Sequence record: MH791411.1
Direction: 5' to 3' (one strand)
Length of the DNA stretch: 64,000 bases
How positions within the stretch are numbered: the first letter of the stretch is position 1; every line of letters begins with the position of its first letter. Shown piece after piece: positions 50,438 through 52,815 of the stretch. A program made the translations under genes and the position numbers. The notes beneath the pieces are model-generated. The model made no database searches, had not been told where the DNA came from, and worked only from the letters and a program-made list of their open reading frames with translations.

Positions 50438-51274
50438 ATGGCAATGAACCCACTAGCTAAGTATACTAAAATTGAAGAACTTGGTACAAAATTGGTCACA
50501 AATGGCGTGATTCCTTATAAAGAAGGAGTTCTTGGCTCTAAAGGTATCAAATGTGGCATTTGTGCTCGTAGTGCACGCGATGAAATGACACTCAATACAC
50601 CAGATATGCTTCTAAATGGTGATGCAATTGCTCGTGTTATTGAAAACTGCGTACCTAACGTACTTGATGCAGATGAACTTTATGTAAATGACGTAGAGCA
50701 ACTACTTATCGCTATTAAAGTAGCTTCTAAAGAAGAATCATATGATATTAATGTGACATGTCCTGAATGTAACAAAGAAGGCCGTTTTGAGCGTAGCTTA
50801 TCATATCTACTAGAAACAGCACAAACTTTCAGTGAAGTTCCTACTGTACAATTGGATAATGGACTAAGTTTAGAGTTTAGACCACTTACTTGGAAGGAAT
50901 ATTCTAACTTCGCAGAAAGAATGTTTACAGAACAACAAAAAACTAAATTCCTTGAAACTGCCGAAATGGAGCAGGAAGAAAAAGTTAAAGTGTTTGGTGA
51001 AGTATTTGAAAGTATGGCACAACTCAACTTTGATATGATCGCAGGAGTTATTGCTAAAGTAATTACTCCTGAAGGTGATGAAGTAACTGAAAACGAATTC
51101 ATTGCTGAATGGCTAGGTCAGCAGTCCAAAGGAACACTTAAAATAATTCGTGAAAAAATGGATGAAGTACTTGAAATTGGTGTTTCCCATACTATGGAAG
51201 TTGAATGCAGTGACTGTAATCATCAATGGGAAATTAATGGACTGAAATATGACCCAAGTCATTTTTTCGCATAA
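50438..51274 (+). CDS. gp26: Baseplate hub subunit (gp26-like)
   Basis: NPLAKY, PDMLLNGDA, DVEQLLIAIKVAS, two CxxC (CPEC, CSDC), YDPSHFF. Confidence 0.8.
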   Translation: MAMNPLAKYTKIEELGTKLVTNGVIPYKEGVLGSKGIKCGICARSARDEMTLNTPDMLLNGDAIARVIENCVPNVLDADELYVNDVEQLLIAIKVASKEESYDINVTCPECNKEGRFERSLSYLLETAQTFSEVPTVQLDNGLSLEFRPLTWKEYSNFAERMFTEQQKTKFLETAEMEQEEKVKVFGEVFESMAQLNFDMIAGVIAKVITPEGDEVTENEFIAEWLGQQSKGTLKIIREKMDEVLEIGVSHTMEVECSDCNHQWEINGLKYDPSHFFA

Positions 51275-51483
51275 TGCTTCTCCACTCATCTCCTGAAGAA
51301 ATACAAGAAGTACTTAAGGAATTTGAGTTGAATAAGTCAGATATTAAAACTGCATTAATGGAGTGTTCTGTTTATATGGAAAGTGTTGATTACGGAACAC
51401 TACTTAATATGCCACTAATTGATAGAGACTTATTAGTTAAGTCTTTTAATAAGAAAATTAAAAAACAAAACGAGAAGCACTAA
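51274..51483 (+). CDS. Small baseplate hub-assembly protein (gp51-like)
   Basis: Coupled to gp26; YGTLLNMPLIDRDLLVK. Confidence 0.55.
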   Translation: MLLHSSPEEIQEVLKEFELNKSDIKTALMECSVYMESVDYGTLLNMPLIDRDLLVKSFNKKIKKQNEKH

Positions 51484-51491
51484 CTCACAAG

Positions 51492-51523
51492 GAGCCAGCA
51501 CATTGTTGCTGGTTTTTTTTTTT
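51492..51523 (+). terminator. Intrinsic terminator
   Basis: CCAGCA-loop-TGCTGG followed by a long T tract. Confidence 0.85.
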
Positions 51524-51712
51524 GGTTTTAAACTACAGAATTGATTGAATTGAATTATGAAAGGAATTAATTATTTTATAGTGAACTCATCTAACTCATT
51601 TCATTCGTTAGCTGAAGAATATTCGTTACTACGTAACTCATATTCATTTCTTATAATTAATTATAAAGAACTTTAAAAGATTTAATACTTGACGGGATTT
51701 GTTGAAGACATT

Positions 51713-52196
51713 TTCATCCCCCCGCAGGGGAATGAAGACAATAAAAAAGAGACAATTAAGTCTCTTAATTCTTGACGCTGATGGTTTCAGCATTTATTGT
51801 ATTGCGAATTTCTTAAAATTCATTAAGAACGAAAGCGGGTTGCTCTGTTTCTCTCTATCGCAGTCATGTGCAACGGTCGTCAGTCTTAATCATCCTGACA
51901 CTCACCTGAAAGTCTATACAATCAAACTTCAGGCTGTTTATTAAATCACTTAATAAACTCCCTTAGCAAATCTGGTAAGGTGCGATCCTTATACATCTAT
52001 CGAGGAACTCTCTGTATGCTTATCGGAGTTCTTTATTGAGCCGTGTCGCCGTGAGGGGTTCAAACTATGCCCACATCTAACGGGTTTCTTCTGCTCATCG
52101 CACTGTTGAACTGCTCATCTGCCATCTACATTTTCGATAGGATCAGGTTCTAATTTATATGCATTTCTGCATTCAACAGGATTGTCATCACTACAA
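51713..52196 (-). ncRNA. Candidate large structured non-coding RNA (family unknown)
   Basis: No credible ORF; more than 10 consecutive hairpins; promoter at 52202-52229; hairpin plus U-tract at 51766-51743. Confidence 0.45.
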
Positions 52197-52201
52197 TTAA
52201 C

Positions 52202-52229
52202 ATTATAGCACCAAATTCAAAAGTGTCTC
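52202..52229 (-). promoter_or_regulatory. Phage promoter GAGACA-N16-TATAAT pointing into the non-coding region
   Basis: Exact consensus with TGC extended -10. Confidence 0.8.
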
Positions 52230-52323
52230 ACTATTATGATAAAAAATTTATAAAAAGTACATAATTCTTGAACATTGAAGTAACGCATAAATATTTTGAT
52301 AAGAATTAGTTTAGTGGGGATTT

Positions 52324-52815
52324 ATGAAGAAAAGATTAAAAGATAGTAAAGAAGCTGCAAACTATCGAAATGAATTACTAAAGAAGCAAAAAGGAATTGA
52401 TCCTATAATTAAGGAACCAATCACTAAGCCAGTACTTGATCACTATCACTTCGAGAATCAACACTGTCGTGAAGTTCTCCAGAACGAAGTGAACGCATGG
52501 GAAGGTAAAGTACAGAACAGCTTTAATCGCTATATGAAGCACTTAACCGATAAACCCTTATACGAGGTACTACGAAATCTTGCGGATTATCTGGAGCGTA
52601 ATAACAGCATTCCTGAAGATGAGCAAGTTATACATCACACTGCACTAACAATCGATACGAATAAGTTTAAAAGGCTCCCAGCAGGACAACAGAATGCAAT
52701 ACTGGAAGAGTTAGGTGTTATCCCTGGTGCAAACAATGCTGCTCGTGTTAAGCAAGCCAGAAAGCTTATCAAGGAAGGCAAATTAAATATGGTAGATATA
52801 AAAAAAGGGAGCTAA
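52324..52815 (+). CDS. gp49: Recombination endonuclease VII (gp49-like)
   Basis: KQKGIDPI, VLDHYH, CREVL...NAWEGKV, LRNLADYLE. Confidence 0.85.
   Translation: MKKRLKDSKEAANYRNELLKKQKGIDPIIKEPITKPVLDHYHFENQHCREVLQNEVNAWEGKVQNSFNRYMKHLTDKPLYEVLRNLADYLERNNSIPEDEQVIHHTALTIDTNKFKRLPAGQQNAILEELGVIPGANNAARVKQARKLIKEGKLNMVDIKKGS

Follow-up and report, generated by a model that had tools for sequence, protein, structure and literature searches.

Introduction

Large RNAs whose fold is tied by several pseudoknots are rare, and almost every one of them has opened new biology, be it ribozymes, RNA-protein machines or RNA cages; GOLLD, ROOL and OLE, for instance, form RNA-only multimers. The locus considered here lies in a stretch of 64,000 nucleotides (nt) from sequence record MH791411.1, hereafter the window, on the minus strand at 51741..52195. 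Comparison of its diverged relatives shows it to be the gene of a predicted stand-alone structured RNA of about 455 nt, called below the jumbo-phage RNA, which matches no described family and whose sequence shows the mark of strong purifying selection. The window belongs to Escherichia phage Ecwhy_1 (100% identity across the 1,001 bp queried, 51400-52400), an Asteriusvirus with 121Q, PBECO4 and RaK2 as relatives.

Two lines of work on jumbo phages are pertinent. The Pseudomonas jumbo phage PA5oct produces two abundant non-coding transcripts, ncRNA001 and ncRNA002, of 236 and 451 nt (PMC7318152). In 2025, a Pseudomonas jumbo phage was found to transduce chromosomal islands (I55/JPTI55) that carry an integrase and defence genes but no transfer genes, and these studies report no RNA shared between island and phage (PMC12595487, PMC12772148). 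No description of the jumbo-phage RNA was found in the literature, where an anonymous entry is possible in a 2023 catalogue of 10,006 viral candidate RNAs. An earlier reading of the window, made from the letters alone (the sequence-only reading), had proposed a multi-branch, new large non-coding RNA at this place; it did not include a multi-copy family, pseudoknots or island copies.

Results

Covariation defines a large ornate RNA

The decisive evidence for an RNA is comparative. Twenty-seven copies with less than 88% mutual identity were aligned in two halves, A2 and A3, and the structure counted here was derived from covariation scans of these alignments. Taking both domains together, 88 pairs are proposed, they are 91-97% paired, and 67 of them carry compensatory changes on both sides. 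The 3' domain accounts for 42 pairs in 7 helices (96.6% paired; 35 pairs and 200 alignment cells changed on both sides) and the 5' domain for 46 pairs in 11 helices (91.2% paired; 32 pairs and 181 cells). None of 500 shuffles reached the observed values in either domain, and slid controls stood at 39-46% for the 3' domain and 30-43% for the 5' domain. Furthermore, four pairings are of the pseudoknot type (PK1, PK2, PK3 and a 3-bp helix at the 3' strand of P1), and about 60 unpaired positions are invariant in the whole RNA, for example in CGACCGUU, GAAAC, AACCCGC, CGAUAGA and UAAGGGAG. With more than 400 nt, no coding capacity and many covarying helices and pseudoknots, the jumbo-phage RNA has the features of a large ornate non-coding RNA, and the strong covariation together with the absence of an Rfam match bears out the new multi-branch RNA first proposed.

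On the proposed strand, G-U pairs outnumber A-C pairs by 126 to 53; this excess and the orientation of promoter and terminator identify the minus strand as the RNA strand. The folding energy of the 455-nt stretch is better than that of shuffled sequences (z = -2.55) and so is that of its complement (z = -2.44). Since the complement folds about equally well, hairpin density alone proves little.

Searches with Rfam 15, whose families include RNase P, tmRNA, group I and II introns, 6S, GOLLD, ROOL, OLE, riboswitches and small ribozymes, gave no match at the gathering threshold for the whole window, and permissive searches returned only terminator-like noise, at E <= 10 for the region and at E <= 5 for 12 diverse members. 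ARAGORN found 0 tRNA or tmRNA genes in the window. Neither program thus contradicts the earlier statement that motifs of tRNA, tmRNA and RNase P are lacking. A suspected resemblance to the conserved regions of RNase P was dropped, the supposedly invariant bases being variable and the pairings different in the alignments. The hammerhead ribozyme is defined by an invariant CUGAUGA ... GAAA core around helix II; here the look-alike box varies (AGAUGAG, AGUUGAG, CAAUGAG), as do the bases after the small helix (GAU, GUU, GCA, GAA; alignment A3), and this candidate, with no Rfam match, was rejected as well.

A protein gene or pseudogene was likewise discarded, as stops occur in all frames and no reading frame is conserved. 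Indeed, a scan for open reading frames (ORFs) agrees with the earlier observation that this is the largest gap without a credible ORF: 51275-52323 is the most extended ORF-poor stretch of the window, interrupted solely by a mechanical 81-aa ORF with a TTG start (51699-51944, plus strand), and stop codons are abundant in all six frames of the RNA region. Length variation among copies is confined to loops, with indels that are not multiples of three. The RNA shares 97.6% identity between Ecwhy_1 and G17, where the flanking genes reach 80-89%, the downstream spacer 90% and the divergent promoter spacer 72%. The GC content is 40% in the RNA body, 36.5% in the window and 30% in the spacer downstream of the RNA.

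A family of paralogues in RaK2-like jumbo phages

The RNA occurs at 293 places in 72 phage records, with 4-5 copies per genome, and a profile search with nhmmer yielded 59 unique full-length copies. The phages concerned belong to Asteriusvirus, Mimasvirus (GAP32, CBB), Eneladusvirus (phages of Yersinia, Serratia and Erwinia) and Alcyoneusvirus (K64-1, RaK2), to which Salmonella Munch-like phages, EJP2 and Xanthomonas XaC1 are to be added. A scan of IMG/VR with a 20-base motif of the 3' core found 57 places, all in contigs or fragments of RaK2-like jumbo phages and all on one shared strand within any single contig; fragments as short as 15.7 kb carry copies confirmed by nhmmer. Within the window, no further copy was found by blastn and nhmmer.

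These places are nearly always without annotation or covered by tiny 'hypothetical' ORFs, and in one record a part is given as a repeat_region. In 121Q-like GenBank records the locus is left blank, filled with several tiny hypothetical proteins or marked as a repeat_region (UE-S1), and in the K64-1 record four ORFs of 23-56 aa are drawn over it.

Phage TH47, 99% identical to the window, has four same-strand copies at about 49.7, 146.3, 262.2 (the window copy) and 345.8 kb, a shared orientation that simply follows the prevailing one of the genes. Cumulative GC skew along the TH47 genome displays no inflection or origin-like signal at the four copies. The tree of the 59 copies resolves five orthologous types, each kept across Mimasvirus and Eneladusvirus genomes. 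The four copies of Asteriusvirus cluster together despite their conserved positions, which suggests homogenisation or gene conversion within that genus. While the other three TH47 copies sit inside co-directional gene arrays, the window copy and its EndoVII-adjacent orthologues (GAP32, CBB, SE_PL) have no co-directional gene downstream and run into the terminator of a convergent gene; no gene behind them depends on the RNA, so it is the RNA itself that is conserved.

Promoter, RNA ends and terminator

The promoter described in the sequence-only reading, GAGACA-N16-TGCTATAAT on the minus strand, is present as it was given (52202..52229), with a -35-like GAGACA at 52229-52224, N16 and the extended -10 TGCTATAAT at 52210-52202. 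In nearly all aligned copies TGnTATAAT follows GGAACA, GAAACA, GGGACA or GAGACA. This promoter matches the divergent, RpoD-like 'TGAAACG' class of CBB and GAP32, which has been associated with DNA-synthesis genes (PMC5259590). Transcription would start near 52195, giving an RNA with a 5' domain at 52195-51958 and a 3' domain at 51940-51741.

The intrinsic terminator, a hairpin with U-tract that had also been noticed before, was found again on the minus strand (51741..51766), its stem formed by 51766-60 with 51753-47 and its U-tract reaching 51741. In the covariation scan this stem accumulates 44 both-sided changes. A hairpin followed by a U-run closes every copy in one of three builds, namely a separate stem, a stem that reuses the conserved GUCAG, or P9 itself; because the hairpin is built so variously, termination as such appears to be under selection. 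In the type II paralogues (L006, L015, L046, L050, L035, L071; alignment A2 columns 185-243), whose terminator stem is the one made from GUCAG, a gene follows directly, and the geometry is riboswitch-like.

Architecture of the 5' domain

All helices described here and below are on the minus strand. P1 (52179-52172 with 52110-52103; unit 52103..52179) encloses the GNRA-capped hairpin P1a (52171-52160), the CUG/CAG helix P1b (52146-44 with 52121-19) and P1c (52140-36 with 52126-22). Its 3' strand is bracketed by a 3-bp GCA/UGC pairing (52114-12 with 52102-00), which is topologically a pseudoknot or an alternative conformer. The helices of the P1 region (1-4) are 87-100% paired and 13 of their 18 pairs changed on both sides. 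P2 (52097-93 with 52041-37; unit 52037..52097), 100% paired with 3 covarying pairs, encloses the invariant CCGU/ACGG helix P2a (52083-80 with 52052-49) and the irregular hairpin P2b (52077-52053), which has a conserved CAUAGUUUG loop and an outer pair that covaries (GC 18, AU 17, UA 3). P3 (52031-26 with 52010-05) is a hairpin in which 6 of 6 pairs covary, and P4 (51991-87 with 51980-76) holds 2 covarying pairs. The 3-bp pseudoknot PK3 (ACA 52046-44 with UGU 51995-93; unit 51993..52046) joins the junction within P2 to the invariant CGAUAGA junction; it is 100% paired, and 2 of its 3 pairs changed on both sides (AUG/CAU, AUA/UAU, ACA/UGU). The domain ends with UAAGGGAG (51965-51958), invariant in the alignment, and is followed by the variable hairpin P4b (51958-51936), replaced in other paralogues by larger insertions.

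Architecture of the 3' domain

The long hairpin P5 (51934-24 with 51915-05) provides the loop strand of PK1, a 7-bp pseudoknot between AUUGUAU (51922-16) and AUACAAU (51802-51796), the latter lying 115 nt downstream of the P5 loop. Pairing in PK1 reaches 99.3%, 6 of its pairs show both-sided changes, and it covaries in K64-1 too, where it reads CUUGAAU/AUUCAAG. After hairpin P5a (51899-95 with 51883-79) comes the 3' core (51803..51874), made of P6 (51862-58 with 51807-03), P7 (51855-51 with 51835-31) and P8 (51829-23 with 51816-10), and of the 5-bp pseudoknot PK2, in which GUUGC (51874-70), within CCGUUGC, pairs with GCAAC of the P7 loop (51843-39). Pairing in the core helices (4-7) is 90-100%, 13 of their 19 pairs carry both-sided changes, and the core is dense in invariant unpaired bases (CGACCGUU, GAAAC, AACCCGC). 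Hairpin P9 (51791-87 with 51781-77) precedes a conserved AUCAnCGUCAR and then the terminator.

A modular hairpin with a ACAAUAUAGAU-type loop is, depending on the paralogue, either inserted at the P8 tip or placed behind P4. It behaves like a movable tertiary-contact module, and movable bracing elements of this kind are carried by large ribozymes and by ornate RNAs.

Among the twelve hairpins listed in the sequence-only reading, eight agree with covariation or conservation and four are unsupported or mispaired. CTGTTGAA/TTCAACAG, GAACTC/GAGTTC, CCTGAA/TTCAGG, GTCAG/CTGAC and AAGAGAC/GTCTCTT belong to the former, as do GTTTATTAA/TTAATAAAC and GCTGA/TCAGC, which sit in variable regions, and TTCATCCCC/GGGGAATGAA (51736-51713), which is conserved but lies beyond the terminator. 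CGAT/ATCG finds no support and GAATTT/AAATTC clashes with the covarying P6 and P8. In the last two cases one strand was given the wrong partner: CCTTA pairs with the upstream TAAGG (51991-51987) rather than with the invariant downstream TAAGGGAG, and CCGT with the first ACGG (52052-52049) rather than with the second.

Neighbouring genes and the module beyond the terminator

The RNA locus is flanked by a small plus-strand gene (51274-51483) and by EndoVII (52324-52815); farther out lie portal, baseplate hub, a gp46/47-like nuclease and a late sigma factor. These neighbours are not replication genes proper, and the earlier idea that the RNA is co-expressed with replication genes is suggested solely by the class of its promoter (PMC5259590). 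A bidirectional terminator-like hairpin (51489-51518) separates the end of the small plus-strand gene from the end of the RNA unit, and the same 'AAAAAAACCAGCA' terminator follows the orthologous RNA copies in GAP32, CBB and SE_PL-like phages.

Past the terminator, still on the minus strand, all phage copies and the E. coli island copy described below share a GC hairpin, in the window TTCATCCCC/GGGGAATGAA (51736-27 with 51723-13), and a box with the consensus CAACAAAUCYCGUCAR, in the window CAACAAAUCCCGUCAAG (51704-51688). A leader-like module (51591..51687) comes after these. It begins with the late-promoter-like UAUUAAAU (51687-80), whose consensus TATAAAT resembles ATAAATA, the late motif proposed for CBB (PMC5259590), and continues with two hairpins (51645-51617 and 51611-51591) with ACGWAGU and ACGAAUGA loops. 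Across copies the module has one or two hairpins with covarying stems and a conserved ACGWAGUGA loop motif. In the window copy it is degenerate and no gene comes after it; most paralogues have, immediately ahead of the next gene, a small hairpin whose loop resembles a Shine-Dalgarno sequence. In many paralogues this hairpin is followed by GGCAAAU or by a start codon. The post-terminator module may be a protein-binding leader.

Copies in bacterial chromosomal islands

The RNA is also present in 2 of 5426 complete E. coli genomes, LR-29-1 (NZ_AP027515.1 3479027-3479514; L225 11885-12573) and NZ_CM130020.1. In LR-29-1 it is part of an island of about 10.5 kb adjoining ffs (L225 7958-18302). The island holds an IS3-interrupted tyrosine integrase, uncharacterised ORFs, a resolvase and the candidate defence systems PDC-M45 (DuOB, DUF488, mSLOG-DUF4326) and PDC-S16, and only its RNA part matches jumbo phages. 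This copy is complete from the promoter to the CGUCAG box and 79% identical to its nearest phage relative; as the differences are largely compensatory changes, it is not a decaying fragment. A scan of 596 Gb of bacterial genomes with a 16-base motif gave at least 120 matches, mostly by chance, and among the matches listed one is real. It lies on a contig of a Buttiauxella metagenome-assembled genome (DAMALH010000023.1; L139 2743-3424), in a second, similarly arranged island, where the intact RNA is accompanied by a tyrosine integrase, a CI-like repressor, a homologue of the ORF257 present in the E. coli island, LprI, a resolvase and a PDC-S73-like protein.

Members of the ORF257 family are widespread among islands of Klebsiella, Yersinia, Cronobacter and others. 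In Klebsiella and Raoultella islands (L226-L228 4303-4496) the RNA body is missing, but a phage-type promoter, the terminator, the CGUCAG box and a decayed GC hairpin are retained, and this cassette precedes a helicase-like gene, ORF498. The cassette is absent from the Yersinia and Cronobacter islands sampled. The proteins that flank the RNA in islands have no homologues in jumbo phages.

Three further non-coding elements were seen in these islands. An element of about 60-80 nt with a ACGUAGUGAGUAC motif lies on both sides of ORF498. A cluster of ATCGATCG-type repeats, iteron-like in appearance, occupies part of the gap of about 700 nt upstream of ORF257 (L225 12950-13150; L229 6800-6900). Finally, a GC-rich non-coding stretch of about 270 nt common to the E. 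coli and Klebsiella islands (L225 11330-11600 = L226 3770-4040) is located just after the integrase region and before an ORF of 35-44 aa; it could be another structured RNA or an attachment region.

Discussion

A proposed role for the RNA and its alternatives

The mechanism that we propose would run as follows. The host RNA polymerase would transcribe the minus strand from the extended -10 promoter of the 'TGAAACG' class, and the transcript would end at the intrinsic terminator. The RNA would then fold into two domains of about 18 helices bound by four pseudoknot-type pairings, in which the invariant 3' core with its double pseudoknot would hold the functional site and the swappable hairpins at the periphery would act as braces, and the folded RNA would serve in trans during infection. 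The gene, from its promoter to the CGUCAG box, would constitute a portable module, which would explain its capture by chromosomal islands. We see roughly even chances that the RNA acts in trans as a folded RNA, whether at the heart of an RNA-protein complex or through binding or catalysis by the RNA itself. This proposal is made because the orthologues with the highest conservation stand before no gene that they could regulate, because no known leader or primer comes near this fold in complexity, and because the gene travels alone into islands. Several points weigh against it. The expression, ends and stability of the RNA are all predictions. Some 200 nt 3' of the terminator are conserved in all copies, which hints at a function in cis or at a longer transcript, and the conserved genomic position held by each paralogue also fits a position-dependent role in cis. 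Most paralogues head co-directional genes, the terminator stem of type II paralogues uses the conserved GUCAG that could alternatively close the 3' domain (GAC/GUC), and the Klebsiella islands are without the RNA body of about 450 nt though they kept its promoter and terminator.

One alternative is a transcription-control cassette working in cis, in which the nascent RNA, together with a phage factor or a ligand, would decide between stop and read-through into the downstream leader and genes. Such a checkpoint, comparable to lambda nut or Q or to a riboswitch, would head long operons, and islands would have copied the cassette to time their genes to infection. The order promoter, RNA, terminator, conserved leader and gene is indeed common to all copies; the three other TH47 paralogues lie within co-directional gene arrays and, like those of types II and III, have a terminator between their promoter and the co-directional genes, all copies in a genome share a single strand, the island cassette is upstream of the ORF498 or ORF257 operon on the same strand, and the type II terminator stem shares the GUCAG able to close the 3' domain. 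We nevertheless hold this explanation to be rather unlikely: the segment that is conserved best, made up of the window copy and its orthologues in other genera, has a convergent gene and a bidirectional terminator ahead of it, 450-550 nt with four pseudoknots are far above known antitermination elements or riboswitches, and the domain-closing GAC/GUC helix is invariant, hence putative. As for a riboswitch proper, the GUCAG common to terminator and putative closing helix is a trait of type II, whereas the window copy has a separate terminator and no gene downstream. The 4-5 dispersed and co-oriented copies per genome of about 350 kb could also be read as origin transcripts akin to those of T4 oriF/oriG or to ColE1 RNA II, the RNA priming or opening DNA at several origins per genome; an island with one copy would then have its DNA multiplied and packaged by the incoming jumbo phage, the element being a satellite handle. 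T4-origin plasmids replicate and are packaged after T4 infection, which counts for this view, as do the conserved non-coding DNA past the transcript end, the AT-richer downstream region (30% GC) and the capture of the element by integrase islands with a helicase-like ORF and ATCGATCG repeats. The promoter class is moreover tied to DNA-synthesis genes (PMC5259590), and jumbo-phage satellites of such an island type exist (PMC12595487). Yet the canonical intrinsic terminator of every copy would release the RNA and leave no hybrid, GC skew has no inflection at the copies, the downstream region is only mildly AT-rich and an R-loop primer needs no elaborate covarying tertiary structure, so that an origin function strikes us as quite unlikely.

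Less probable still is an RNA of phage-host conflict, a decoy or sponge that would neutralise a host factor or defence in phages and, in islands, titrate a phage protein or sense infection, which would be a special case of action in trans. Island copies do stand amid candidate defence genes (PDC-M45, PDC-S16, PDC-S73 and SMODS neighbours), several paralogues could cover several targets and the extended -10 promoter could be active in the absence of phage factors. However, just 2 of 5426 complete E. coli genomes carry the RNA, it has been lost from related islands, and short repeated binding motifs like those of CsrB are absent. Finally, it is very improbable that the locus is no RNA gene at all, being instead the remnant of a protein gene or a repeat acting at the DNA level, for example a recombination hot spot or an array of protein-binding sites. 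While some GenBank records show small hypothetical ORFs or a repeat_region there and the complement folds about equally well, the stops in all frames, the loop-confined indels that are not multiples of three, the 67 compensatory pairs, some linking segments more than 100 nt apart, the G-U excess and the promoter and terminator conserved in orientation all speak for an RNA.

Significance

Each genome keeps 4-5 anciently diverged paralogues, and the RNA is more conserved than the adjacent structural and recombination genes; such conservation of the RNA paralogues implies that the phage evidently needs the RNA. We consider it a speculative and rather doubtful extension that the jumbo-phage RNA represents a new functional class, a ribozyme or a ribonucleoprotein core, on which RaK2-like phages would depend, and that its cassette would serve as a handle for islands acting as satellites or defenders. 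If true, this would be the first RNA-based link from a jumbo phage to its satellites. The island copies provide a testable hypothesis on the interaction between islands and jumbo phages, which became an issue with the discovery of jumbo-phage satellites in 2025. The RNA is tractable, being carried by the culturable E. coli phages 121Q, PBECO4, G17 and Sharanji, which grow on K-12. Furthermore, dozens of GenBank records that show spurious small ORFs or nothing over the RNA gene can be corrected.

Comparison with known systems

Like lambda nut, Q/PR'-tR' and HK022 put, the jumbo-phage RNA is a promoter-proximal RNA element followed by a terminator, in most paralogues at the head of co-directional genes, and like a checkpoint of the lambda Q/PR'-tR' type it would by default be a short terminated RNA. 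Known antitermination elements are, however, simple stem-loops of 30-200 nt, and the window copy has no operon behind it. With T4 oriF/oriG and ColE1 RNA II it has in common that a promoter drives a non-coding transcript, a few hundred nt long, which is portable to other replicons, and with T4 oriF/oriG also a middle-type promoter and several occurrences per phage genome. It differs from both in that their transcripts stay hybridised to the template without a terminator, whereas it has an intrinsic terminator and a complex tertiary fold.

The PA5oct transcripts are alike in being non-coding transcripts, made in a distant relative of the RaK2-like phages. As homologues they were rejected, with no nhmmer hit at E <= 10 (L084) and 0 of 6 invariant motifs. 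The E. coli, Buttiauxella and Klebsiella islands resemble I55/JPTI55 in having an integrase beside a small-RNA gene, defence cargo and no transfer genes; they differ in their hosts, in the helper clade and in the integration site (ffs here, tmRNA there).

GOLLD, ROOL and OLE have no sequence or structure homology to the jumbo-phage RNA, Rfam models failing even at E <= 10. Unlike them, it comes in 4-5 paralogues per genome, all with a promoter and a terminator of their own, and it is confined to RaK2-like jumbo phages infecting Enterobacterales and Xanthomonas and to a small number of islands. The likeness lies in the make-up: 450-600 nt, many covarying helices, pseudoknots, no coding capacity and a GC content above that of the surroundings (PMC12286853). 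GOLLD and ROOL, furthermore, are likewise borne by phages or prophages, and modular peripheral hairpins that switch positions are another common trait of these ornate RNAs and the jumbo-phage RNA.

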